Below, piece after piece: positions 6,594-58,774 of a DNA stretch of 64,000 bases. Location of the stretch: the sequence record NC_048673.1. One strand, given 5' to 3'. Within the stretch, counting starts at the first letter, position 1. Every line of letters starts with the position of its first letter. The translations under genes and the position numbers were made by a program. A model generated the notes under the pieces. That model was not told where the DNA came from. It ran no database searches and was given only the letters and a program-made list of their open reading frames with translations.

Positions 6594-6635
6594 TTGCATC
6601 GGTCTTTGGTTATGGTATTATATCTACATCGAAAC
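6594..6635 (+). promoter_or_regulatory. Early promoter cassette, exact 42-nt repeat copy 1
   Basis: TTGCATCGGTCTTTGGTTATGGTATTATATCTACATCGAAAC: -35 TTGCAT, extended -10 TGGTATTAT; identical to 7089..7130. Confidence 0.85.
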
Positions 6636-7088
6636 AAAGGAGACTGTTATGAAAATCGAATGCGAATTCAAAGCCGTACCCAACAATACCAAGTTTTACG
6701 TTCTTCGTTATGTTGGTGCACCAACCAGTGACTCTATTAGTTTCTTCAAGGGTGATTCTAATATTTGTCATGATGTATATGGTGAGTGGAAAACCCCGGT
6801 CGATTTTGATAACACTCATCCATGTTGGTATTTTAAGGATTGATAATGAATGTAATTGTACGCGAAACGAATCATGGGAAGGATTTGATCTATTCCCATG
6901 ATAATGGATTTACTCGCCACGTTGTTCAAATTTATGATGGTGGTTACGCTTGTTATCTTAATGAGAGTCGATGCTTTAAGAGAAAAACACACGAGGTGAT
7001 GATGACTCAATGTGGTATTGATCCAAAAGAGATTAATCCTTTACCATGGAACTCTGATGCATATTATCGAAATTGTGTGATTTAGTAC

Positions 7089-7130
7089 TTGCATCGGTCT
7101 TTGGTTATGGTATTATATCTACATCGAAAC
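7089..7130 (+). promoter_or_regulatory. Early promoter cassette, exact 42-nt repeat copy 2
   Basis: Identical to 6594..6635. Confidence 0.85.
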
Positions 7131-7155
7131 GAGATACCTAACTGAGGAAGAGATT

Positions 7156-7503
7156 ATGAAACACGTACTGATTGCTCTGGTTGCTTTGTTCGTTCTGGTT
7201 GGTTGCAAAAAAGAAGTTAGCGAAGTTTCTTTCGTTGATACTGTGACTGTTACCAAGTTCGTTAAGAAGCATTCCGATAGCCAGCGTGTGAGCGTTACCA
7301 CTTCCGAAGGTATCGAGATGAACAACCACGTTGTTTCTCAGAAGGGTACAAACTGCCTTGGTTGCTATGCTAAAGCTGGTGATAAGCTGGAAGTCACTGT
7401 TAAGAAAACTACCTATGAGGATGGTTCTGTTCATTACTCTTTCAATAAATCTGAAATGAAAACCGCTCTGAAACTGAACCGTCGTAACAACTATGCCAAC
7501 TAA
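7156..7503 (+). CDS. Predicted lipoprotein, CxGCY family copy 3
   Basis: Lipobox LVG-C; motif CLGCYAKAGDK. Confidence 0.8.
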   Translation: MKHVLIALVALFVLVGCKKEVSEVSFVDTVTVTKFVKKHSDSQRVSVTTSEGIEMNNHVVSQKGTNCLGCYAKAGDKLEVTVKKTTYEDGSVHYSFNKSEMKTALKLNRRNNYAN

Positions 7504-18024: not shown

Positions 18025-18741
18025 ATGGCTAAGATCAGCAAACAGGCGTTGAAACTCCATAATAAGGCTATGGATCTTGTTCACTCGGATAAAGTCCTCT
18101 CATGGGATGAACGTTGTTTTATCCTTGAGAATTACCAAGAAGGTGCTACCCAGATGAATGGCCTTGCTGGTGCATTCTTCACCCCAGTTATGTTAGCTCG
18201 TGATGCTATGATCGAAGTTAACCAAGACCGTTCTGTATTGGATCTATGTGCTGGTATTGGTGGTCTGTCTTTCTGGTTGTATGACAACGATGTCACTTGT
18301 GTTGAGTTGAACCACGAATATTTTGAGGTTGGTAAACGAGTCGTACCTCATGCAAACTGGATCCGTGGTGATGCACTGGAATACTGTGATAACACTAATG
18401 ACCGGTTTGATTTTTGTATTAGCAATCCACCTTTTGGAAACATCAATACATCTGGTTATAAAGGTCGGTATACTGGCGCAGAATTCGAATATAAGGTAAT
18501 AGAGGCCGCTAGTAAGGTATCTGAATTCGGGGTCTTTATTATCCCTCAGATGAGTGCTGGATTTAAATATAGCGGAGTACGTTCGTTCTGTGATAAAGAA
18601 CCGTCAAATAAGTATTTGAAGTTTACCGAGCAAACAGGGATCCGTCTTGAACCGGGATGTGGTGTAGACACTTCGATTTATCTTTCTGAATGGCATGGGG
18701 TAAGTCCCATGGTCGAAATAGCAACAGCGGAATTTTATTGA
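18025..18741 (+). CDS. Orphan amino-DNA methyltransferase (N6-adenine type)
   Basis: SAM-binding VLDLCAGIGGL and catalytic ISNPPFG motifs. Confidence 0.85.
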   Translation: MAKISKQALKLHNKAMDLVHSDKVLSWDERCFILENYQEGATQMNGLAGAFFTPVMLARDAMIEVNQDRSVLDLCAGIGGLSFWLYDNDVTCVELNHEYFEVGKRVVPHANWIRGDALEYCDNTNDRFDFCISNPPFGNINTSGYKGRYTGAEFEYKVIEAASKVSEFGVFIIPQMSAGFKYSGVRSFCDKEPSNKYLKFTEQTGIRLEPGCGVDTSIYLSEWHGVSPMVEIATAEFY

Positions 18742-29064: not shown

Positions 29065-29091
29065 AAAAGGGATCCTGTGAGGATCCCTTTT
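29063..29091 (+). terminator. Intrinsic terminator, GGGATCC family
   Basis: AAAAAAGGGATCC-TGTGA-GGATCCCTTTT. Confidence 0.85.
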
Positions 29092-29549
29092 GTTTTATTT
29101 AAACTGATAATATATATCATCAGTTGCTCATTTATATTTAGGGTACTAAAATGTATACACCACCTTTTAAGAGTTTTAACATTCCTGTTATAATTGATAA
29201 TTTGGTTCTCGACCTCCCAGTAAACGAACACAAATATGACAAATTTGCTGTAACTGTAAACAATGATGGTCTGGTTGAACTTTGGCCCGAATCTTGCGTT
29301 TGTGTTGGTATTGTTTACAGTAAACAGTGTGGTTTCTATGTATGTGATGATTACAAAGGGTTTTGTTACGACAGTGAGATCCCAGTGGGTCGTGTTGACC
29401 ATGAAGATCCCAGTTCACTGGGATATCTAAATTGCATTTGGTTGTTTGAACGTCCAGATGATGGGGTAATAAATTTTATTTCTAAAAACATATTGACACC
29501 AGACGACGAAAGTGTAGAATAAGGGTCGTAACGTTGATGGAGAGAAGAT

Positions 29550-29888: not shown

Positions 29889-32542
29889 GAGGAAATTATT
29901 ATGAAATTTGGACTTGATGAAGCTAACCTTGTTGTGAATCACCTGTTGCTTGACCAATCCGATGAAATTTTGGAAAAGATCCGGGACACTCGAAAGGGTG
30001 ATATCAAGGATGAACCTTTCAAACTGACTGTCTTGATCAACGGCATCGAGATCGAACATGTTGAATCTTACGAAAACTTCATGAAATACCAGTATGAAGT
30101 TATGGAAAATCGGGTTAAAAAACAATACAACGTTGAGGCGTTTGACCAACGGGTACGAGAAGCAGCGGAACAACTTATCAAATCCAAGTTTGGTGATTTG
30201 ATGAACAAAATGTATGATTTTGAAAATTCAGTTGATTTTTGCAACGACGTAATTCAAAAAGAATGGGGTATGTAATGAAAAAACTTTATGTAGAAAAACG
30301 AGTCACGAAAGACGTTGAAGGGATTGTGATTGAAGAGGGTAGCGGATTCAACTATAAATCAAAGCGTTTGGTCGTCTCCGTTATTAACAAAAATAATGGT
30401 GTTGTATCACAACTTATTGCGTGTATTACAGGATTAACTATTATTTTAGACCATTTTAATCTGAGTGGTGGTGTCCGTGTTACTGAGTATCATTCAGGGG
30501 GTACTGTTACTTATGAAACTGATGTATCTGAGTTTGGAATGACTCTGAACGGTAATCTGTTTACAATCAAAAAAGAGAAAGTATCAGAATTTCGGGAACT
30601 GGAAGTTGGTGATATGCTCACTATTGGTCTTCGCCGAAACAAAAACCCGAAAGACATTTCTGTATCGTTTATCGGTCACGATGGTTCCGCAATTGCAACC
30701 GATTGCAATGGTAAATCATACTTCATCAACCGGAACGACCGAGATCAACTAAAATCACTGAAACTGAAACTGATGTAATAAAAAGTGTTTGACATAGCCA
30801 ACCACACTCTGGTATTCTCTATCTCGTAAACAACAACGAGGAAATGACTATGAAAGAAGGTAGCAACGTACAGATCAATAGCAATGTGATGAATGACGAA
30901 AGTCAACGTCATTTGTTTGGTATGGTAGGTGTGGTTTCATACTACAATCCAGAGGTTTGGGTTGAGGTTACTTGGCCCAATGGTACTATCAGCGCATATG
31001 AAGAGAATGAACTGATCTGCATCGACAAAGAAGAGAAGAAACCATTACCGGAAGTAGTACAACCAGAATCTGGATATGATGTTTCTTTTGTTGAAAAAGT
31101 AATCGAGAAAATCAATGATTATCATCGGGACTACCTTGAGCGTCATCCCAACGATTGGGACTGTTGTGGATTTTCCTCTGTGTATGTTGAATTTGGAAGA
31201 AAGAAAAAAGTAAAAGACCTTGTTTTGGGTCTCGGGTTTGACATTGCGTATAAATCAGGTAAAGAATCTTTCTTGGAACCAAAATTTAGAATTCCGTATT
31301 GTGGTCATCAGTCGTTGACCTACAAAGAGGAAATCATGCAGATTATTTGTGACGAAATTAATAATGTGGTTGGTGAAAAAGTTGCATACCGCAGCTCTTA
31401 CATGGACTAATAAAAGGAAAAATAATGAAAGCATTTGTTTATAAATTCAAAAATCTGAAAGAGCGGAAAGAATTTATCGGTCTAGCCAAAATTAATGATT
31501 GGATTGTTTCTAATTATCTGGTTGATTATCGTCTGACAGTTAACCAAGATAGCTTGAACAGACTTAACAGCGATGGTTATATTAGCCGTTTTATTGTTAA
31601 TGGTGTATTGAAGGTGGACGAATTCAACACTATTGACAGTGACGAATTTTATAAATATTTCGTACTCGATAAAGAGATTGAAATTGAAGATCTTCCGAAG
31701 CCTCGTCAGATTAGTGACGAAGAACTAATGGGGGCGGTGACTAAGGAAATCCTTCTTGATAATAGTCTTCCAACCCGGTCTAAATTTGGTGAGATTAAAC
31801 CCGCATCTTTTGGGGATGTAACTAAACCCTTGAAGAAAAAAGACGAAGGTCTTAACATAACAGGTAACCTAAAAATTGGAAATTGTCAGTTAGCACCACT
31901 AGATCAAGCAATTTTCAATCTAGTTAACACACAAGGTAAACTTTCTCAAGATATGGAAATCAAAATTTCCATTAAAAATGGTAAGGTGACATTCAGTGTA
32001 TCCAAATGATCAATATCCACGTATGAACTTTGATACCATTTACCGTTTTCGGTCTACCGAAGCGGCTCAAGAATATCGTACTAGTTGCGAACGTAATTTT
32101 TATAATTATGAAATTCTTAAGAATGGATTCATCGTGTTTCATATCGACGACGATGAAAATGTAATTGCGGTTTGTGATATTGAAGATAAGGAAAAGAAAA
32201 ATCCAATCTATATCAATGACGGAACCGTTTTTATTAACCAAAAAGAGAGTTTTCTTTTTATTCCGTGTCGGTGTTAAATATGACAGTTAAAGAATTGAAG
32301 GATAAAGCCCGGTCTTTCGGGCTTGCTGCTGAAATTATTTTGAACAATGCAAAATATCGCGGATTCAACGATTGGATGTATGATTTCGTAACCCTTGACG
32401 AATCTCGTGGGATTACAGAAACAAACGTAGTTAAATTTTATTTTGTTAGCGGTGTTCATACCATTTCCCACCCAGTCAATATGGTTGTCTTGGGTCATTC
32501 ACCAGAAAAAGTTATTGGTGAATTTCATAAGGAGGTTATCGA

Positions 32543-33202
32543 ATGACCATAAAATGGAGGGATTACGAATTATCTTTATGTGAAAGAAAAGAAATAAAGG
32601 AATTCGTAGAAGCTCATCATTACTCTCATAATATCAATGGTCTAAAAACATCATATTGTTTTCGGATTGATGATAAAAATGGAAAATTGGTTGGGTCTGT
32701 TATATTTGGACAACTTAGTACAACTGCATGGAAAAAGTTTTCTGATAAAGAGGATGATGTATTAGAATTACGGAGACTAGTGCTGTTGGACGAGCTACCT
32801 CATAATTCCGAATCGTGGGTCATTGGTTCTTGTCTGAGAATATTGAAAAAATTAAAAACTCATAAAGTTGTAATTAGTTATGCAGATCCGTTTCATGACC
32901 ATGTTGGTATTATATATCAAGCAACAAACTGGATATATGTGGGTGAAACGCCTAAAGATAAACTACTAAAAACACCAGATGGTAAGTTGTATCACAGTAG
33001 GGCATTGAGAACAAAATATAAAGGTATGTTGAAACCTTTTGCACAAAGACTACAATATATGAAAAATAATGGTCTTCTAGAAGAAGTAGTAGTACCGGGA
33101 AAACATAGTTATGTTTATCCGTTAGTTCATATTAAAAAACTTGATAAAGTTAACCAGATGGAACAAAAACAATATCCAAAGCAAAGAGATATAGAAAAAT
33201 GA
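32543..33202 (+). CDS. mom: Mom-family (GNAT-like) DNA adenine modification enzyme
   Basis: HHYS, LELRRL, NSESWVI, ISYAD..H.G.IYQATNW.YVG are Mom-family motifs. Confidence 0.8.
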   Translation: MTIKWRDYELSLCERKEIKEFVEAHHYSHNINGLKTSYCFRIDDKNGKLVGSVIFGQLSTTAWKKFSDKEDDVLELRRLVLLDELPHNSESWVIGSCLRILKKLKTHKVVISYADPFHDHVGIIYQATNWIYVGETPKDKLLKTPDGKLYHSRALRTKYKGMLKPFAQRLQYMKNNGLLEEVVVPGKHSYVYPLVHIKKLDKVNQMEQKQYPKQRDIEK

Positions 33203-33693
33203 AAATTCGTTATGTTAAAGGCGATATGATCGCCATGATGAAAGACCCAGAAGTATTGAAGATTCCAACTTTGTTCGTTCATGGGTGTAATTGTCATACC
33301 GCAATGGGCTCTGGTATTGCTGCTGGTATTGCCATGAACTTCCCAGATGCGCCTATTGTAGACGCACATTTCCAACGGCTGTTTAAGACAAACGGTCAAG
33401 TGGATATTGGAATGTTGGGTCAATATAGCTGGACTCCCTTAGATTATGACTCTCGATTGATTAACCTATACACACAATATTTCCCCGGTCGAGATCTTCG
33501 TTTGGATGCATTAGAGAATGGTTTCGTCCACTTAGCGGAAGATTTTGGATATGAAGGGTATCGACTTATATTCCCAAAGATTGGGGCTGGTGTTGCCGGT
33601 GGAGATTGGGATGTTATCTCACAAGTAATTGAAAATTGTTTTGACGAAGACGATTTCGAAGAATTGATTTGTGTCGAATGGGATAAAAAGTAA
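33199..33693 (+). CDS. Macrodomain ADP-ribose-binding/hydrolase protein (T4 Tk.4-like)
   Basis: KGD, HGCNC...MGSGIA, INLYTQ, FPKIGAGVAGGDW. Confidence 0.92.
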   Translation: MKIRYVKGDMIAMMKDPEVLKIPTLFVHGCNCHTAMGSGIAAGIAMNFPDAPIVDAHFQRLFKTNGQVDIGMLGQYSWTPLDYDSRLINLYTQYFPGRDLRLDALENGFVHLAEDFGYEGYRLIFPKIGAGVAGGDWDVISQVIENCFDEDDFEELICVEWDKK

Positions 33694-33717
33694 TCATTAT
33701 CTCCCAAAGGCTCTAAC

Positions 33718-33724
33718 CTAAATA
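33718..33724 (+). promoter_or_regulatory. Late promoter CTAAATA at the tip of a hairpin
   Basis: AAGGCTCTAACCT-AAATA-AGGTTGGAGCCTT upstream of the spanins. Confidence 0.65.
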
Positions 33725-33757
33725 AGGTTGGAGCCTTTTTATTTGGAGATATTAATA

Positions 33758-34135
33758 ATGGTAAGATACAAGGCAATTATATTTGGGATTCTTCTTATTT
33801 TGGTTGGTGGGTCTACTTGGTATATGTTCAACAAGATCGAATCACAGGCAATAACAATCGGAGAGATGACCCAACAACTAGAAACAATGACATCCAAATT
33901 ATCCGCCATGGAATTGAGTATAAGCGATTTCAAACAACAGTCCAGCGAGTATAGTCAGACGGAAGAGAAATCGAATAGAGAGCTTTCTAAGCGCATTGGT
34001 ACGCTGGAATCTAATGCTAGTCGCGGTAAGGATGCAATAGACAAGAAACCTAAGCTAGTAGAGAAGATAATCCAGAATGATTATGAAGAGTTTGGAAGCA
34101 GAATGGATTGCCTTACTCTGGGGGAATGTAAATGA
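33758..34135 (+). CDS. Inner-membrane spanin (Rz-like; T4 pseT.3 equivalent)
   Basis: N-terminal TM plus long coiled coil; 4-nt overlap with a lipoprotein gene. Confidence 0.8.
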   Translation: MVRYKAIIFGILLILVGGSTWYMFNKIESQAITIGEMTQQLETMTSKLSAMELSISDFKQQSSEYSQTEEKSNRELSKRIGTLESNASRGKDAIDKKPKLVEKIIQNDYEEFGSRMDCLTLGECK

Positions 34136-34431
34136 AAAAAATTCTAATTATGATGTGTATAGTGGTTCTTGCTGCATGTTCAACACCACCGAGACCAGAC
34201 CCGGTATTAGTGTTTCATCCAAATAGACCAATCCCTGTAAAAACTTATATTCCTAAATGGACTGTTATTAAGGAAGGTGAAACAACTTATGTCGGGATGA
34301 CATATGAGGACAGTTTAAGGTATAGGGCTTGGCTTGAAAAAATAGGTGTTTATATAGATTCACAAAATAGAATGTTATGTTCTTATAGAAAGGATCTGAA
34401 AGAACCACAATGTCAAAAAGTCCCCAAATAA
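34132..34431 (+). CDS. Outer-membrane spanin lipoprotein (Rz1-like; T4 pseT.2 equivalent)
   Basis: Lipobox LAA-C, Pro-rich linker, YVGMTYEDS and C-terminal Cys pair. Confidence 0.8.
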   Translation: MKKILIMMCIVVLAACSTPPRPDPVLVFHPNRPIPVKTYIPKWTVIKEGETTYVGMTYEDSLRYRAWLEKIGVYIDSQNRMLCSYRKDLKEPQCQKVPK

Positions 34432-34447
34432 GGGACTTTTTTGTTAC

Positions 34448-34454
34448 CTAAATA
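34448..34454 (+). promoter_or_regulatory. Late promoter CTAAATA
   Basis: Upstream of the tail fibre gene. Confidence 0.7.
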
Positions 34455-34492
34455 AAAGAGTAGAAACAATTTCAAAATAGAGGAATTTAAAA

Positions 34493-37400
34493 ATGGCAGA
34501 CCTTAAGAGTTCGTCTACCGCTGGGGGTGGATTAGTTTGGACACAGACTAACCTACCATTTTCCCCGCAAGACGTTAAGCTGTTTTATAATGGTAATGAG
34601 GTTATTGATAGTGTTAGTAATCAATCTATTGGTGGGGATAAAACCTTTACCGGAACATTGACATATAAAACTCCTGTCAATTCTAATGAAGTTGCCATTA
34701 AAGGTTATGTTGATAACCTAGATAGTACATCGGTGAAATCTGTAACCGGGACTCTCCCAATCGTCGTTACTACTGGTGTAAGTCCGCGAGTTTCAATTAA
34801 TAACGCAACGCAATCCGCCCATGGGGCAATGAGTAAAGAAGACAAAACAAAACTTGACGGTTTGCCTGTTCGAGCTGTTAATAGAGATGGTGATACCATG
34901 ACTGGAAACCTAATGGTTAATGGTCAGGTTGAAGCAAATAGAATCAAGTCCAACGGTCAAGTTGAAGTTTATGATTCTGCTACCAATACATATGCACAAC
35001 GTCTAGTTGCATCTGGTTCCTTACTTTATTTCCAAGGTGGTAAAGTAGATAGAGACGTTACGGATCAACGAATTGCTTTTAGTGGTTGGTATGGTACACC
35101 ACTAACTCAAGTAAGATTTAATATGGCTGCCGGGGTTAATCCTCAAGTATCTTATGGAAATACAAACTATGATATTTTCCATAAAGGTAATTTGCCTAGT
35201 GCGGAAGAAGTAAAGGCAATGGCGGTATATGATCGTCCACCAGAAGATGATTGCGATAAAGCAATTATGCCCGGTAACTATGGTGTTTTCGCCAACACAA
35301 AAAATACTCCCGTTGCTGGTGGTATAGGACCTAGTGGTTCAACCCTCCTTGTTACTCGTTGGGGTAATGGGGCAAACGCACAAATATTCTTTTCTTATAC
35401 TGAAAACCGTGTATGGGTGCGCAGACAATATATCGGTGTTTGGCAGCCATGGGCTGAAATGTATACCTCTCTGAACAAACAGCCGGTGGGTGGTATGGGT
35501 CTTGGTGTTGGTGATAGCCCCAACGCGATCACAGTAACCGGTGGTGTTCGTGACTTCAACCTAATTAAGACCAACGGTGTTTTTACAGTTGATGGTAACT
35601 GGGCTAATGGAACTGACAATACCGCAACTGCAACTACTCATACGGGTATTGTTGAGGTTAAACAACGATCTTTCGATAACTTGACTGTTCAGAAATTCAG
35701 TAACTGGGTAACAGTCGGTGGATTTGTAGAACCAAGAGAGTTTACAAGGGTATGGATTAATGCAGTTGAAGGTTGGCAACCATGGTTACCGACTGGTGTG
35801 TGGGAACAGGTAAACACATATAGAACTGGTATTCTAAGACACAATAACTCTACTAATGACGATTCTGTTTATCCTTACGTATCTTATACCAAGGAAAAAT
35901 ATCGTGATGGTGTTGCTGCTGGTATTCCATACACAATAGGTGAGGTTAGTTTTAGAGTTGGTGCTACAAACCGATATGATCCCCATAGTGGCGATCAGTT
36001 GTCTAGAATTATAGGTCAAGCAACAAACACAACCACAACCGGTGAATATGAAGGTACTTTGTTCTTAGCTTCTAGATATCGCAAAGGGTCTGATGGTTCG
36101 ACTGCTGACACTAGTACACTAAGAATAAGTAGAGATGTTGGTGCTGAATTTACCCATGCAGGTAAGAAAGTACAGATCGAAACCGGTAATGTGAATGCAG
36201 AGAAATTTATTGTAACCACAACTGGTTATGCACTTCAATATTCCGGTAATGCAAACCAAGGAATCTATTTAGATAATAGAACAATTATTGGTGGTGGTTC
36301 ATCTGGTGTTGTGATTCGTCCAAATGGTTCGGGAACTGTAACTGGGGAAACTGTCTTTAATGCAAACGGTACTATATCAAATAACCAAGTTCCGACGTTG
36401 GCAATGCATTTAACAAACAAGGCATATGTTGATGGTGTTGCTCTTGGTGGTTTTAGTTCTATTATCACACTGAGAGATACAGATAACCTCAACGATATTA
36501 AAACCGCTGGTATATATAGCCAAGTTGCTAACGCTAAAGCATTAACTAGTTTGAACTATCCAGTTGAGAAAGCTGGTAACCTTATTGTTACTACTTCCGC
36601 TGGCGTTATTCAAAAATATTGGGTATATAACTCGTCCGAAGTTTGGTCTAGAGCACAATATTCAAGTGGTGCGTGGAAGCCTTGGTATCGTGACTATAAC
36701 GAAGAGTTTAAACCTACTTCCGCTGATGTTGGGGCGTTGTCTTTAACTGGTGGTACTGTAACTGGGGATGTTAGATTTAACTCTGGCAACACCACTAGAT
36801 TGACTCTTGGTAGTGGTTCTGATTATTACGTCGAACGCTCACCATCTGGATTGACATTAGCTTCTGGAACTATCAATCCGAAGGTTAAAGTTAATAACAC
36901 AGATTATGACATATATCATACCGGCAATAAACCATCAGCCGCCGACGTTGGTACATTAACAACTACACAGATAAACACAGAGCTTAACAAAAAGCTTAAT
37001 CTGTCTGGTGGTATCATGACTGGCGCAATTCGTTGGGATGCAACAGATGAATATATCAACGCCGCGAGCAACAATATATATCTGGCTGCTAAGACTGGTA
37101 CTGTATATCTTGAAAGCAAAAATAACCCAATGGTAAGGATTGGAAGTAACGATTACACCATATATCACACTGGTAATAAACCTTCTGCTGGTGATTTTAA
37201 TGCATACACAAAAACTGAAACAGATAATTTACTTAATACTAAATTAAATCTGTCTGGTGGCACTCTAACTGGAGCGGTAACTACTGCAACCATAAAGAAT
37301 GCTGTTATGATTAATAATGGTGCATCGATTAGTTTCCAAGACGGAGCTAATGCTAGATTCCATATACTGACAGAAGGTAACACCTTTAAACTAAAACATG

Positions 37401-44890: not shown

Positions 44891-44966
44891 TGGTGCCGAA
44901 TGTCCGACTCGAACGGACCACCCCAGCGTTACAAAGGCTGTGCTCTACCAGATGAGCTAATTCGGC
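44891..44966 (-). tRNA. tRNA-Thr(UGU)
   Basis: Cloverleaf; loop TTTGTAA; encoded CCA. Confidence 0.95.
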
Positions 44967-45244
44967 AGCGGATTATAATCAGGATCGTTAGACTGTGATT
45001 ATATCCTAATGTAGTTGACATGCTATCACAAGGAGGAAGGACGTTCAACTGATTTTGTCCATCTGTTCGTTGTTTGGTAAAGGACAGTTACCTCAAGTTC
45101 AACCCTGCTTGTCAAGGAGTAGTTACCATATCGTCTTTATACTACCAATCCCGCCTGAAACCTAAAGGCACGTTTCAGGATATCCAGATTCTCTATGGCT
45201 GGCTTATTCCGGGGCATACGTCGTTACCCGTTCTTTGTGCTAAG

Positions 45245-45320
45245 TGGTCGGTGATACAGGACTCGAACCTGTGACCCTCTGGTCCCAAACCAGACGCGCT
45301 ACCAACTGCGCTAATCACCG
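45245..45320 (-). tRNA. tRNA-Pro(UGG)
   Basis: Loop TTTGGGA; encoded CCA. Confidence 0.95.
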
Positions 45321-45474
45321 AAAAGTTCCAAACCAACTGTATTTTACATACCAGATGACCACATCCCTATAATGGTTGATTTGGATTACCCCGTGCTTAT
45401 CCGTAACGGTTTAAAACCGCAAGGGGGCATCGTCTCCGAGGATTTTATCAGAACGTCTTCTAACTTCTTCTATT

Positions 45475-45565
45475 TGGTGGATGCTGTTGGATTCGAACCA
45501 ACTTGTTTACCCAGAGGGAACGGATTTACAGTCCGCCGCTACACCGCCATCGTAGCCGAACATCC
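45475..45565 (-). tRNA. tRNA-Tyr(GUA)
   Basis: Loop CTGTAAA; long variable arm; CCA. Confidence 0.95.
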
Positions 45566-45571
45566 AGAATT

Positions 45572-45647
45572 TGGCTGGCGAGGTGGGATTCGAACCCACG
45601 ACATACGGATTAACAGTCCGCTGTTCTACCTACTGAACTACACGCCA
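45572..45647 (-). tRNA. tRNA-Asn(GUU)
   Basis: Loop CTGTTAA; CCA. Confidence 0.95.
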
Positions 45648-45648
45648 T

Positions 45649-45726
45649 TGGAAGCGGGAGGTGGATTTGAACCACCGATTTCCAGATAATGAGTCTGGCG
45701 AGAACTCCTGACTTCTCCACCCCGCT
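45649..45726 (-). tRNA. tRNA-Met(CAU) with atypical U37
   Basis: Loop CTCATTA; acceptor AGCGGGG; CCA. Confidence 0.85.
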
Positions 45727-46107
45727 ATGATATTTAGGGTGGTCTTTCACCCTTCATGAATCTTGGTCATTATAACCCGGCTACATACGCGCATCAACAT
45801 CCCTTTTGATATTTTTAGAAGCGATGGGACTCTGTATCGCTTCATTATTATCGTAAGGTCAACGACCATTAAATTCGTGAGAGCTTACAACTATAGAATA
45901 TATGCATTAACTATGGATTTTTCGATCTGTCTTACTGATGTAAGTTTACTCTTACCTTTAAACTTAAAGGCAGGTTCTCCATTTGGAGCAAACCCAAAGA
46001 CTACTAAACTATGGCGTCCATTCTTCCAATGGATTATACCATCACCAACTGACCAATTTTCAATTATGGATTTTATACCAGACATAATATAGCTCTCATC
46101 AAAAATT

Positions 46108-46184
46108 TGGTGGCCCCTACTGGACTCGAACCAGTGACCAACCGATTATGAGTCGGTTGCTCTAACCAACTGAGCTAAGGGGCC
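46108..46184 (-). tRNA. tRNA-Ile2(CAU, lysidine type)
   Basis: GGCCCCTTAGCTCAG...CTCATAA...GGGGCCACCA closely matches the enterobacterial ileX pattern. Confidence 0.9.
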
Positions 46185-46268
46185 AAATGATATGTTCTTT
46201 AGTCGAGCCGACTTATCCGTATTCTTTCAACGGTGAGCTGATAGCTGTAACACATCAATTTTAAATCT

Positions 46269-46344
46269 TGGAGCGGGTAGCCGGTAACGATCCGGTCTAC
46301 TCAAACTTGGAAGGCTTGCATGTATCCATAAACACCTTACCCGC
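46269..46344 (-). tRNA. tRNA-Gly(UCC) with atypical T-loop
   Basis: Loop CTTCCAA; T-loop ATCGTTA; CCA. Confidence 0.85.
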
Positions 46345-46345
46345 T

Positions 46346-46429
46346 TGGTCGGGATGGACGGACTCGAACCGTCACGCCTATGGCGCTAGAACCTAAATCT
46401 AGTGTGTCTGCCAATTTCACCACATCCCG
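46346..46429 (-). tRNA. tRNA-Leu(UAG)
   Basis: Loop TTTAGGT; variable arm; CCA. Confidence 0.95.
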
Positions 46430-46506
46430 TGGTGCGCCGTACTGGATTCGAACCAGTGACCCACGCTTTAGAAGAACGTTGCTCTATCCAACTGAGCTAA
46501 CAGCGC
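46430..46506 (-). tRNA. tRNA-Arg(UCU)
   Basis: Loop CTTCTAA; CCA. Confidence 0.95.
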
Positions 46507-46507
46507 A

Positions 46508-46557
46508 ATTTATATAAACATCATATCATAGTTAGAAAGGATGTTTAACTTTTATTT
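46508..46557 (-). promoter_or_regulatory. tRNA-block promoter, 50-nt repeat copy 1
   Basis: TTAAAC-17-TATGAT followed by TATAAAT; 49/50 identical to 47622..47671. Confidence 0.8.
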
Positions 46558-47526
46558 GAAGTATTTTTCGAAGTAAGCGACTGGATGTCTGGCTTCTTCA
46601 TCATACTCGTATTTAGGGGTGTCAGAAAACAATACCCTATAAGCAGTTTTCATCCCCGAACCATATGGTATCTCAATTTCATCGTTAAAGTCAAATGCTA
46701 TATAACCTTTTTTACGGAGAGACCGACAACTAACACTCAACCAAGGTCCACAACAGGATCTAAGTCTACCAATTGCATAGATATCCTTACCATCATTGTT
46801 AATATAGCAATAAATTTTGTCTACATCAACACCATGGATATTTTTCCATTCTTCGCTGGTTTGTTTGAAGACCAAACTTGATTGAATCTCAGTAAGATCT
46901 TTCATGCTAAACCACCATATATTTCCACATCCCAAGAAATGATTTCTGTAACTTTGTAATTAGCACAGTCACCATTAGCCAAACCACGGATACAGAAAGA
47001 AGGAAGACACCCATGAACATCATACACTTTGTCATTGGTTATTTCTACGTCACCCGTAACAATAATGATATTACCTTTCTTGTAAGTTTCTACGGAATTC
47101 AGAATACCAACCGGATCGGGGGTATCTTTAGCATTATCGACGTTAAAACATTTTTGACCAAAATTGATTAGAACTGGTAGCTTTTCAGAGAATTCATCTA
47201 CAACTTGTTCACTCAAAATGAATTTTTGACCATTAGTATTGACCAATAAACCTTTTTCATTAAGGTTATAGGCACCAAGCTTCACTTTCATTTTAATATC
47301 TCGATTTTTGATAGAAAGGCTTCAAATGTTTACCACGCATAATCTTAACGCATTTACCTTTACAGTGATCTTCATTGAAGATACTACTCCAAAGGACATC
47401 GCGCATGTAATTTCTGATGTATACGTTCATATTAAGCATCTCATATTGAATTTTGGAGATGATAAACTCATTTTACGTTCAAAAGCTCATTCAACAAAAA
47501 GGAATTTGGGTTTATCATCTCGTATT

Positions 47527-47619
47527 TGGTGCGTGAGGTGGGAATCGAACCCACGATGTGCCATTATGCAGTATCGGATTTTAAGTCCGATGCGTTTCAA
47601 CCAACTTCGCCACTCACGC
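47527..47619 (-). tRNA. tRNA-Leu(UAA)
   Basis: Loop CTTAAAA; long variable arm; CCA. Confidence 0.95.
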
Positions 47620-51652: not shown

Positions 51653-52216
51653 TTAGATTTTACTTTGGAATGGGTGTCCTGCACCGATACCGACCGGGTT
51701 TTGTTTTGGTAGGATTTCCAAATCGTTTACACCAACAACACTCATAGATGAGTAACTAAATGTTACATTACCTATAAGGGCTGGGTTTCCGTCATCAACA
51801 TAGGACAATTCTATATCGTCCAATGAACTCGGGAATGGGTCATGAAACTTGAAAGTCAATACTATATTCTTTTTTGAGTTATCCAGAATATGAACCAAAA
51901 TAGATCTAGGTCTAGCACCCGGTAGATGGGCGGTGGAATTGAAAGTTCTACTATCAGTAACAGAGATCATCCATTGATACAACTCTTTATAAGATTCGAA
52001 ATTTTCATCAATCAAAAATCTAATCCTAAATGGTTCGTAAATGATCTTCGAACCCGGCATAAGTCCGGACGTCATCTGATTTATCGAAACTCTTGTTATA
52101 TCCATTTCCATAGTTGGAAGAACAACAGATTGAGCTGATGTTACAAAGTTGGCGGTTGTGTTTGCGTCTGGGATTTCCAGACGCATGTTTGTTATGTGTG
52201 CTTGATTATGTATCAT
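51653..52216 (-). CDS. 3: Tail completion / tube terminator protein
   Basis: PGSKIIYEPFRIRFLIDENFESYKELYQWM...ILDNSK. Confidence 0.9.
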   Translation of the reverse strand: MIHNQAHITNMRLEIPDANTTANFVTSAQSVVLPTMEMDITRVSINQMTSGLMPGSKIIYEPFRIRFLIDENFESYKELYQWMISVTDSRTFNSTAHLPGARPRSILVHILDNSKKNIVLTFKFHDPFPSSLDDIELSYVDDGNPALIGNVTFSYSSMSVVGVNDLEILPKQNPVGIGAGHPFQSKI

Positions 52217-54081
52217 GTTGACGGTTGAACCCCATATGAATATTGTGGTTGGTCTGGTCTAAATTCACCAAAACCAGACGGTAGAACGGAATTCATACTA
52301 TTATATGTGGTATTATTTACAGCAGCCATTAACGCACCTTCTTGACGTCGTGCATCTCGTTCTTCCTTTTCACGTTGTTGTTTAGCTCGGAATTCTTCAA
52401 CCTCTTGGTTTCTTTTCTCAAGGGTTTTAAATACAGGCTCATTTTCACCCGCCTTAATTTCATTCCCTAATTTAGATTCCGGTTGAGCTTCACTAGCATT
52501 AGCTTTTCCAAACAATGACCCGGTAAGACTTTCCCAAGCACCCTTCGCAGCATCAACACCCTTATCCAACAGATCTGGATTCTCTTTGGCGAAGTTATAC
52601 AACTCATAAGCCATCAAGCCAGCACCAACAAAAGGAATTGCTCTACCGGCGACACGTACCGCCATACCAGCACCAGTTAATGCGCTTTTTGGTATAAATT
52701 TTGAGGCTGATTTTGCAGCATCGGTAGCAACAGACCAACCCTTTTTACCAAGATCAGCAGCCCTTGACAAAATACCAGCCTTCCCTTTAGGGGTAGGTGT
52801 CTTTGTTTTAGGTGTCTCAATTTTTGCTGGTTGCCCCGGTCTTGGTTCTGGTGTAGGTGGCTTCTTTCCATCCGGTTGTGTAGTTTTCGGAGACTTCTTA
52901 GGATCCTTAGACACATCGTTTGGATTAACACCACCAGAGCCAGACGATGGTGTAGGGGTCTTACTTCCCAATCCCGGTATCTTATCAAACAACCCCGAAA
53001 ACTTAGCAATTAAACCACCAACAGCAGCAGATAGGGCACCCGCAATCATAGGAGCCAAACCAAGAACCGCACCAGATAGAACACTGATACCAGAAACAAG
53101 ACCACTAAGAACAAATCCAACACCACCAATCAGTTTACCGATCAACATGGACATCTGGATACCTTTAAGAACATCGATTAAGCTTTTATGACGCTTTTCG
53201 TTGTTCTCTCGTTCTCTTCCATTTTCTTGTCTTTCTTTCTTTTGCTCTTGGTTATTTCTATCTGTTTTTACTTTGTCTTCTGGTTTGTTTTGTGGGATCT
53301 GTTGGAATCTAGAAGTAGCATCAGCCTTCTTCTCTTCATAAGCCGCATTCGCTTTTGCATCTAATTTCTTTTCCTTACGGGCGTTATGTGCATCAATAAT
53401 AGACCCACCAACAAACTTCGTTGCATTAGCGGCCTGATTATAACCGGGAATAGTTGATAACAAATCGTTTATGGTTCCAGTAACCATACCGATACCAGCG
53501 GACATAGTATGACCAAGTATTTTCGCTGTTGCTGATGTTTCTGATTTCTTCATTCGATCAACTATATTAGCTTTTTTTGCTATCTCTCGAACAAATTTAC
53601 CAGTTTTTTGATTTTCTTCTTTGAAATTTTCCACAAATTCACGACGATCACCAACTTCGCGTTGTATAAATTCTTTCAAAGTCTCCCTAGTGTCTTCCTG
53701 CATAGGTTTGGCAGTTTCCCCCTGTTCCGGGTTCTGACTTTTTACACCTTGGCTATAATCCACTAGGGGTTGTTTATTATTTAAAATGTCTTCCAGTTGC
53801 TTTCGTCTAGCTGAAACTAATTCGTTTTCAACCTTATTACTACGCTTATTATCCTTTCTGGCACCTTTTATCTGGTTCGCTAATTTTTCTTGTTCTTGTG
53901 CGACTTCCAGACTGGAATCAGAGGTAATATCATAAGACGCGGTAAGGTCTTTTGTTGAGTTGGACAACTTTTCTGTCTTGTCGTCCAACTTAAGCATCGA
54001 ATCAGAAACAATATCCATAGCATCCGTGACATCTCGAACCGATTTATCAAGTTCGTTCTGTTTCTGCTTGTCAATCATCAC
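52213..54081 (-). CDS. Probable tape measure / baseplate hub protein (gp29-like)
   Basis: 622 aa, coiled-coil and low-complexity with central hydrophobic stretch; GTG start; lies directly after the 26/51-like locus. Confidence 0.6.
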   Translation of the reverse strand: MMIDKQKQNELDKSVRDVTDAMDIVSDSMLKLDDKTEKLSNSTKDLTASYDITSDSSLEVAQEQEKLANQIKGARKDNKRSNKVENELVSARRKQLEDILNNKQPLVDYSQGVKSQNPEQGETAKPMQEDTRETLKEFIQREVGDRREFVENFKEENQKTGKFVREIAKKANIVDRMKKSETSATAKILGHTMSAGIGMVTGTINDLLSTIPGYNQAANATKFVGGSIIDAHNARKEKKLDAKANAAYEEKKADATSRFQQIPQNKPEDKVKTDRNNQEQKKERQENGRERENNEKRHKSLIDVLKGIQMSMLIGKLIGGVGFVLSGLVSGISVLSGAVLGLAPMIAGALSAAVGGLIAKFSGLFDKIPGLGSKTPTPSSGSGGVNPNDVSKDPKKSPKTTQPDGKKPPTPEPRPGQPAKIETPKTKTPTPKGKAGILSRAADLGKKGWSVATDAAKSASKFIPKSALTGAGMAVRVAGRAIPFVGAGLMAYELYNFAKENPDLLDKGVDAAKGAWESLTGSLFGKANASEAQPESKLGNEIKAGENEPVFKTLEKRNQEVEEFRAKQQREKEERDARRQEGALMAAVNNTTYNSMNSVLPSGFGEFRPDQPQYSYGVQPST

Positions 54082-57715: not shown

Positions 57716-58774
57716 ATGAAAGTTAATATTCTCAATGGGGTTAATAGAGCTACTGGTGGTAGTTTCAACCCACTCACTGACACTAAGTCAGAGGGAACTG
57801 ATCTTATTATAGAAAATAAAAACTCTAAGAAACCCGGTATAAAGGCTTTACAGTACCCATTAACCATGAAGGGTAGTGACAACAAACACTCTTCCTATTT
57901 AGTTTTCTATGCTGTGAAACCAACAAATGGGGGGCTTAAAAACAGTGATATCCACGAACGTTCTATGAGGTCTGTTAAGGGTAAATTCAACGAAGAAACC
58001 CTAGCCGTTATTCAGCTATATATGCCAAACATGAACGAAAACATTAGCCATAATTATGAAGATAACGATGGTGGATTCCTTCAAGATATAGTTATGAACT
58101 ACCAAGCCAACGCATCAGAAAGAGATGGAACATTAGATAGCATTGCAAACGGTGGTAAAGCCGTTGTAAACGCAATGGCACAAAAGGTTATCGTCTCCAC
58201 TGGTGGTATTGCACAGCGATATAATTCTCAGGTAACTGGTAATTTGCTTGGTGATCGAGCCGCCCAAATGTATCGTGGTACTGGTGTACGTTCCCAAACA
58301 TTTATATTTCAATTCCGACCGAGGTCTATGGCAGAATTAAAAGAGGTTGGACAAATAATTAAAACTTTTATGGTTCTTAGTGCTGCCGAAAACAAAGGGG
58401 CTGTAGATCTTGCTTCTCTTGGAATTGGTACTGATTCAGAACTTGGTGCGGGTGAAGGGTATACTTATCTCGAAGTACCACCTTTGTGGTTTATAGAAGA
58501 AAGGGTAAGTCAAAGTCAAGAACAGAAGATTAGATTTACACCTAAATTCGCAATGGGTCCAGCCGGTATTAGTAATATCCGGATCAACAAAACCCCAGAC
58601 CAAATATATGATACATTCGCGTCAACGGCTGCGGATTCCGTCGCAATAGATCTAGAAATAACTGTTACAGAACTTCGTCCGGTTTATCGCGATTACTGGG
58701 AAGCTCTTACATCAGATTTGGGTAATCCTGATTCTGGTGAATTCTTCTTCGGTTCGTATGGAGGTAAGAGATAA
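57716..58774 (+). CDS. 48: Baseplate tail-tube cap
   Basis: IQLYMP, QMYRGTGVRSQTFIFQFRPRS..E, GPAGISNIRINKTPD, LEITVTE. Confidence 0.85.
   Translation: MKVNILNGVNRATGGSFNPLTDTKSEGTDLIIENKNSKKPGIKALQYPLTMKGSDNKHSSYLVFYAVKPTNGGLKNSDIHERSMRSVKGKFNEETLAVIQLYMPNMNENISHNYEDNDGGFLQDIVMNYQANASERDGTLDSIANGGKAVVNAMAQKVIVSTGGIAQRYNSQVTGNLLGDRAAQMYRGTGVRSQTFIFQFRPRSMAELKEVGQIIKTFMVLSAAENKGAVDLASLGIGTDSELGAGEGYTYLEVPPLWFIEERVSQSQEQKIRFTPKFAMGPAGISNIRINKTPDQIYDTFASTAADSVAIDLEITVTELRPVYRDYWEALTSDLGNPDSGEFFFGSYGGKR

Follow-up and report, generated by a model that had tools for sequence, protein, structure and literature searches.

A Mom-family GNAT gene carried as a dispensable, gene-sized cassette by Aeromonas phage AS-zj and other Ceceduovirus phages

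[quoted passage not shown] 2026, PMC13219725). Mu Mom can draw on any of the three E. coli tRNA-Gly isoacceptors, TCC among them, and mom is expressed late; two homologues of Mu Mom are also reported as active (PMC13219725). An HTH-like insertion at residues about 175–209 is needed for activity. R111, S124 and R151 are essential, while H58, Y59, W48, Y159 and W181 are strongly important; R151A leaves no detectable activity, and changes at W181 or W48 reduce activity drastically (PMC13219725). Independently, Karambelkar et al. found H58, Y59, R111, S124, D149 and Y159 to be important (bioRxiv 10.1101/861617; their numbering is 10 lower), and R111 to be conserved in Mom homologues but not across GNATs. 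A first-pass annotation of the DNA considered here had given the Mu product as N6-methylcarbamoyladenine. Adenine as the modified base is correct; the name is an older one, the product now being described as 6-NcmdA made from Gly-tRNA-Gly (PMC13219725).

Mom-family genes have already been reported in jumbo phages, where Mom–endonuclease fusions were described by Iyer, Aravind and colleagues (PMC7824862). Within Straboviridae, the family that also contains the phage studied here, T4 has the hmC/glucosylation pathway (genes 42, 56, alpha-gt and beta-gt). Its presumed role, protection of the whole genome from host nucleases, would be shared with Mom, whereas the enzymes and the chemistry are unrelated: T4 acts pre-replicatively on the cytosine nucleotide pool, and Mom would act post-replicatively on adenine.

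The DNA analysed (the window) is a stretch of 64,000 nt, and coordinates below refer to it unless marked as record coordinates, which for AS-zj are the window coordinate plus 124,000. Positions 31400–34500 are 100 % identical to Aeromonas phage AS-zj (MF448340.1 / NC_048673.1), which has a genome of 229,929 bp and belongs to Straboviridae, Emmerichvirinae, Ceceduovirus; the T4-like phage proposed in the first-pass annotation is therefore borne out. The gene of interest, HWB28_gp321, carries the RefSeq product name ‘Mom-like DNA modification protein’. Its counterparts in AS-szw, AS-yj and AS-sw are labelled ‘Mom’ in GenBank, and the counterpart in the vB_AdhaM_G2 record is named ‘mom-like DNA modification protein’. 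The Mom identity of the AS-zj gene is thus already known from public records, and its recognition from the bare sequence is a sound re-discovery. In the literature searched, neither DNA-modification data nor any mention of Mom was found for AS-zj, P19 or any Ceceduovirus. The features of the locus are collected in Table 1.

Table 1. Positions of the AS-zj mom gene and of associated features in the window
Feature	Position	Strand	Basis
Mom-family GNAT gene, HWB28_gp321	32543..33202	+	ORF, 219 aa, ATG start; Pfam, PHROG, 8bv8, AF2, RefSeq label
Shine-Dalgarno-like AAGGAGG, 7 nt before the mom ATG, within the end of the upstream gene	32529..32535	+	Read from sequence
Left AATGA, left indel edge; upstream-gene stop overlapping mom start	32542..32546	+	Alignment with CC2 and four other mom-less phages
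Right AATGA, right indel edge; mom stop overlapping macrodomain start	33198..33202	+	Alignments
Terminator-like hairpin, 14 pairs and T run, closing the unit after the macrodomain gene	33706..33738	+	Consensus scan; putative function
Two-way terminator-like hairpin, putative upstream bound of the unit	29065..29091	both strands	Consensus scan
Sigma-70-like match TTGACA-18-TATTCT, intergenic, candidate early promoter	30789..30818	+	Consensus scan
Other sigma-70-like matches, candidate early promoters for the mom unit	29167-29194, 29493-29520		Consensus scan
Phage tRNA-Gly(TCC), possible co-substrate source if the enzyme is Mu-like	46269..46344	-	ARAGORN; putative link to mom

Membership of gp321 in the Mom family is evident at the level of profiles. 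Pfam PF25680 ‘Mom’ matches the protein with E 1.2e-39 and 136.5 bits (cut-off 27.1) over profile positions 2–202 of 202, and PHROG 1384 ‘Mom-like DNA modification protein’ matches it with E 3e-68. The motifs quoted in the first-pass annotation are present, with HHYS at residues 25–28, ELRRL at 75–79 and NSES at 88–91, and because of these two profile scores they are not chance matches. No generic Acetyltransf-type Pfam family matched gp321 at E ≤ 0.1, Mom being the only family found, and the lone NCBIfam match, XF1762_fam, scored 28.8 bits, under its cut-off of 50.

Structural comparison leads to the same family. When the single gp321 sequence was searched against all PDB sequences, the sole significant match was 8bv8 (E 4e-8), the crystal structure of phage Mu Mom S124A. 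This entry was matched at E 3.9e-17 by a profile built from 53 close relatives and at E 2.2e-29 by a profile built from 45 diverse relatives, the latter aligning chain 29–218 with the insertion included. An AlphaFold2 model, for which the 53-sequence alignment served as input, has a mean pLDDT of 94 and a pTM of 0.86. In a Foldseek search of the PDB the top match of the model was 8bv8_A (E 5.2e-14, TM 0.74/0.73), followed after a wide gap by generic GNATs with E of at least 1.7e-6 and TM ≤ 0.52. An unrelated GNAT fold, the outcome against which the first-pass annotation had set its Mom-like reading, is thus not what the model resembles; Mu Mom ranks first, well above the generic GNATs. In the BFVD viral structure library the best match was ‘Mom’ of Salmonella phage FSL SP-031, with TM 0.87. 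By sequence, profile and predicted fold, gp321 is a true Mom-family enzyme, an assignment for which sequence and fold could hardly give firmer grounds.

Residues were mapped to Mu Mom through HMMER alignments, in which the 8bv8 chain index plus 9 gives Mu numbering; the offset is anchored by S124A, equivalent to the second S of NSES, and by the HY pair H58/Y59. The two proteins share the GNAT core with an HTH-like insertion and are of similar single-domain size (219 aa in AS-zj, 232 aa in the 8bv8 chain). Counterparts of six residues important in Mu are present: H26 (Mu H58), Y27 (Y59), R78 (R111), S91 (S124), D115 (D149) and Y125 (Y159). Among 45 diverse relatives at 28–55 % identity to AS-zj Mom these positions are 93–100 % conserved; Y27 is kept in all 45, H26 and Y125 in 44 each, S91 and D115 in 43 each, and R78 is R in 42 and K in 3. 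In the close clade the same six are found in 53/53 sequences, except for S91 (S in 44, T in 9). The HTH-like insertion appears in the model as helices 152–156 and 165–175, lying between strands. It is strongly basic, with R153 represented by R/K in 45/45 relatives and H151 present in 36/45. Judged from alignment and model, AS-zj Mom thus retains both the catalytic core and the DNA-binding insertion known from Mu.

Other positions that matter in Mu are not kept. Mu R151 corresponds to F117, Mu W181, in the insertion, to L149 and Mu W48, at the dimer interface, to K16, and each of these is a variable position in the clade. Additionally, the AS-zj clade has invariant features of its own, namely H120 (45/45), where Mu has R154, and G122 and K187, where Mu has G and Q. 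With H120 in place of Mu R154 and no counterpart of R151, W181 or W48, this clade may differ from Mu in how its active-site loop and dimer interface work. Absence of the R151 and W48 equivalents makes it less probable that the protein works exactly like Mu Mom; it does not lower the case for a Mom-family enzyme. In alignment terms, the absence of R151, W181 and W48 is a departure from Mu and not from the Pfam family.

The family to which these proteins belong is large, with 4,957 representatives of 50 %-identity clusters matching at E ≤ 1e-3 and 2,481 at E ≤ 1e-10. The closest relatives of AS-zj Mom are metagenomic and Salmonella-phage proteins, at 54–62 % identity over 81–98 % of the length. 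A tblastn search of a phage collection with E ≤ 1e-5 picked up 208 records, among them ICP1-type Vibrio phages, Listeria and Staphylococcus myoviruses, RaK2/K64-1 and a T4-like cyanophage; only nine are Aeromonas records, all from the seven mom-carrying phages described below. The Mom-like proteins of Salmonella phages FSL SP-031 and VSiA and of metagenomic phages share the clade motifs, the single domain and a length of about 200 aa with AS-zj Mom, and their genes likewise lie among early or nucleic-acid-metabolism genes, whereas the phage types and hosts differ; no experimental characterisation of these proteins was found in the literature searched. Many other Mom relatives are fused to endonuclease domains. 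AS-zj, itself a 230-kb phage, has the Mom domain in common with the jumbo-phage fusions, but its Mom is a stand-alone protein without a restriction-endonuclease-fold domain.

On two large metagenomic phage contigs the Mom homologue is a lone gene amid nucleic-acid-metabolism genes. On one, SRR33375183_15796 (134 kb), the homologue (6602–7264, 57 % identical) is followed by an overlapping gene of the PolyA_pol/CCA-adding-enzyme family, and several DNA methyltransferase genes flank it. A CCA-adding gene beside Mom fits the need of Mom for a tRNA CCA end, which is suggestive as a single instance.

Twelve Ceceduovirus genomes were aligned over the mom region. Seven carry mom (AS-zj, AS-szw, AS-yj, AS-sw, P19, G2 and AsSzw2) and five do not (CC2, Aszh-1, Asswx_1, Assk and AP1); in AsSzw2 the gene is present and only the left flank has diverged. 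Carriers and non-carriers differ by exactly 657 bp, with AATGA at each edge, and where mom is missing, the same ATGA joins the stop of the upstream gene directly to the start of the macrodomain gene. As read from the alignment, this difference fits either a precise deletion via the 5-base repeat or cassette exchange by recombination in the flanks. In a neighbour-joining tree of the flanks, carriers and non-carriers are interleaved, with Assk grouping with AS-yj and AS-sw, and the presence of mom therefore does not follow the local phylogeny. Between AS-zj and AsSzw2, identity is 92 % for mom but only 68 % for the gene at 31425–32009, two to three positions upstream, a local mosaic of the kind that recombination in the mom region typically leaves. 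A cassette bringing its own ribosome-binding site was considered, with GGAGGTTATC in AS-zj against GGATATTATT in CC2, and was rejected, as the same variants occur in the mom-less phages AP1 and Assk; the Shine-Dalgarno-like stretch varies among relatives independently of the presence of mom.

Each of the seven Ceceduovirus alleles has an intact reading frame of 219 codons, and no substitution occurs among them at the six catalytic-site residues. Between AS-zj and P19/G2, dS is 0.48 and dN/dS 0.056; between AS-zj and AsSzw2, the values are 0.36 and 0.069. By these estimates mom is under strong purifying selection, with dN/dS of about 0.06. With dS values of 0.36–0.48 between alleles, mom is an old resident that has been gained, lost or exchanged, and it is dispensable because five close relatives do without it. 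On the evidence of the alignments, mom is an accessory gene that is long established in the genus, under selection and dispensable, rather than a recent import. The first-pass annotation had called the gene acquired; its foreign-looking composition and its presence or absence as a cassette agree with that description, whereas the divergence of the alleles shows that any acquisition was not recent.

Composition was compared across 112 ORF-level genes picked greedily in the window. The GC content of mom (0.320; mean 0.382) and its GC3 (0.214; mean 0.353) are both the lowest of the 112. The codons AGA, ATA and TTA together make up 8.7 % of its codons against a window mean of 2.9 %, ranking it 6/112. 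Fisher tests gave enrichment of AGA among Arg codons (p 0.014) and of ATA among Ile codons (p 0.003), while TTA among Leu codons was not significant (p 0.15). The seven genes upstream of mom and the macrodomain gene have only 0–2.4 % of these codons; the two spanin genes just downstream, at 7.2 % and 10.1 %, are rich like mom. A richness in AGA, ATA and TTA relative to the neighbours had been noted in the first pass. It stands for AGA and ATA and in comparison with the upstream genes and the macrodomain gene, but not for TTA, and not in comparison with the spanin genes. Even so, a composition this extreme speaks for a foreign origin of mom.

A cluster of 10 tRNA genes was found by ARAGORN on the minus strand at 44891–47619; it is not in the RefSeq feature tables returned for AS-zj. 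Its members are Thr(TGT), Pro(TGG), Tyr(GTA), Asn(GTT), two with CAT anticodons, Gly(TCC), Leu(TAG), Arg(TCT) and Leu(TAA). With tRNA-Arg(TCT) and tRNA-Leu(TAA) of its own, AS-zj can therefore itself decode AGA and TTA, codons found in mom, and its tRNA-Gly(TCC) is of a type that Mu Mom accepts.

The overlap of mom with a macrodomain gene, also recorded in the first-pass annotation, is a 4-base ATGA at 33199–33202; the macrodomain assignment of the neighbour, 33199..33693, comes from a Pfam Macro match of E 7e-5. The mom start overlaps the stop of the upstream gene likewise, and mom is translationally coupled to both neighbours. The coupling to the macrodomain gene was considered as a sign of a functional unit with mom and rejected as such, since phages without mom have the macrodomain gene at this position too, with an identical overlap. 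The macrodomain gene (plus strand) is Tk.4-like according to a note in the CC2 record and matches PHROG 335 ‘phosphatase’. Its NCBIfam similarity to the DarG antitoxin, a DNA ADP-ribosyl glycohydrolase, is weak and stays below threshold (E 4.9e-6, 26 bits; cut-off 250). Its product, present with or without mom, could counter DNA ADP-ribosylation.

Mom lies within a tightly packed plus-strand unit. The late tail-fibre gene at 34493 is set apart from this unit by the closing hairpin of Table 1 and by a second small hairpin seen by eye. The late promoter TATAAATA has 7 matches in the window against 6.1 expected, none of them just upstream of mom. Given the hairpins and the lack of TATAAATA just upstream, early or middle expression of mom would be expected, unlike the late, heavily regulated mom of Mu. 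The sigma-70-like matches of the region do not exceed those in shuffled sequence and serve as leads. In Mu, Com overlaps the mom start and the late promoter is under Dam/OxyR control, an arrangement not seen in AS-zj: a Pfam search of the upstream protein of 88–93 aa gave no Com-family match, only a weak SAP match, and this protein is also present in mom-less relatives. The two phages differ in lifestyle as well, AS-zj being a lytic T4-like phage and Mu a transposable temperate one.

The preferred reading, with a probability of roughly 0.6, is that AS-zj gp321 is a functional Mom-family GNAT enzyme with Mu-like glycyl-transfer chemistry. By homology to Mu Mom, double-stranded DNA would be held in the cleft between the GNAT core and the HTH-like insertion. 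A glycyl group would be drawn from charged tRNA-Gly, either that of the host or the phage's own tRNA-Gly(UCC), and placed after replication on N6 of selected adenines; rearrangement of the adduct on the base would then give N6-carbamoylmethyl-adenine, a bulky major-groove mark that would impede restriction endonucleases. If the motif were the same as in Mu, the adenines in S-A-S context, 13.3 % of those in the window, would be the candidate sites. For AS-zj Mom we infer the donor, the acceptor, the product, the early or middle timing and the anti-restriction benefit, all by analogy. An identity of only about 20 % to Mu Mom counts against so close a likeness in chemistry. It is unlikely, and yet conceivable, that gp321 is an active Mom-family enzyme with chemistry unlike that of Mu, using another aminoacyl-tRNA or acyl donor, or making another adduct, or acting at another motif, base or nucleic acid. 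Such an enzyme would be in keeping with the missing Mu-essential R151, the replaced W181 and W48 and the invariant H120, G122 and K187 of the clade, and Silva et al. state that neither co-substrate nor substrate can be predicted from structure alone (PMC13219725); conversely, all six acyl-transfer-site residues are kept and the basic DNA-binding insertion is present. A bolder proposal, which we hold to be distinctly doubtful, is that the AS-zj Mom clade may install an adenine adduct that differs chemically or in sequence context, as the main protective mark of the hmC-less, mom-carrying Ceceduovirus phages, written early and with help from the phage tRNA-Gly.

The generic GNATs found as weaker fold matches, the great functional diversity of GNATs, and the label of just ‘acetyltransferase’ given to some relatives in phage records could be taken to mean that gp321 modifies no DNA at all, being Mom-like by ancestry only and acetylating proteins, small molecules or, in the manner of the TacT/AtaT toxins, charged tRNA. 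This is quite improbable in view of the Pfam match to Mom alone at E ≤ 0.1, the rank of Mu Mom as by far the best structural match, the presence and conservation of the Mom-specific insertion that is required in Mu (PMC13219725), and R78, whose Mu equivalent R111 sets Mom homologues apart from GNATs at large. That mom is a decaying passenger with no present role might be suggested by its atypical composition and by its absence from 5/12 relatives without visible consequence. However, 7/7 copies are intact and of equal length, dN/dS stays at about 0.06 over dS of up to 0.48, and the gene is preceded by a strong ribosome-binding site and coupled to both neighbours through overlapping start and stop codons, so that decay is highly improbable.

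The first-pass annotation had proposed an adenine-based strategy in place of hmC and had named genes 42 and 56 as those to look for in the rest of the genome. In the AS-zj record no dCMP hydroxymethylase or glucosyltransferase is annotated, and when td was searched with phmmer --max against the 715 stop-to-stop segments of the complete AS-zj genome, no td paralogue came up, and thus no gene 42 homologue; td, confirmed by Pfam, is the sole thymidylate-synthase-family protein. AS-zj has a dUTPase-family protein at the gene-56 position, together with td and a dCMP deaminase. In a genome with no detectable hmC pathway, an adenine-based mark is a plausible candidate for what protects the DNA. AS-zj, AS-szw and Asswx_1 have been described as T4-type phages with DenA and Alc homologues and without known base-modification genes, and it was suggested that some unknown protein modifies their DNA, Mom not being mentioned there (PMC8056088). 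Mom, if it modifies DNA, would be such a protein in AS-zj and AS-szw but would leave Asswx_1, which lacks mom, unaccounted for.

The Alc-like gene of AS-zj, annotated ‘inhibitor of host transcription’ and located outside the window at record coordinates 57806–58321, matches phrog_1253 with E 6e-42 and Pfam ALC weakly, with E 4e-4. T4 Alc spares only cytosine-modified DNA. An Alc-like gene in an hmC-less genome poses the question of how AS-zj spares its own transcription, a point also raised in PMC8056088. Within the window, a DNA methyltransferase-like gene at 18025–18741 (plus strand) matches phrog_3820 with E 4.5e-118 and, weakly, the Pfam families MTS and N6_Mtase; an adenine N6 methylase, should the gene encode one, would share its target atom with Mom.

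Should the virion DNA of a mom-carrying Ceceduovirus contain momylated adenine, this would be the first case of tRNA-dependent hypermodification in Straboviridae. The seven carriers and five non-carriers, being near-identical phages, form a ready natural comparison panel. AS-zj Mom would also sample a part of the family that does without a Mu-essential residue, and could thereby help to explain how tRNA and DNA are recognised by these GNATs. For Aeromonas phages considered for aquaculture, such a modification, if present, would bear on sequencing, on cloning and on restriction typing.

Two annotation points concern other parts of the AS-zj record. An intact ORF of 622 aa with a GTG start lies on the minus strand at 52213–54081, between the tail completion gene and the baseplate hub gene, in a 2-kb gap of the RefSeq annotation; it matches phrog_11300 (unknown function) end to end with E 2e-265, and its absence from RefSeq is probably an annotation omission. 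The DNA polymerase (record coordinates 34411–37103, outside the window) is annotated as two overlapping CDSs, 34411–35931 and 35928–37103.
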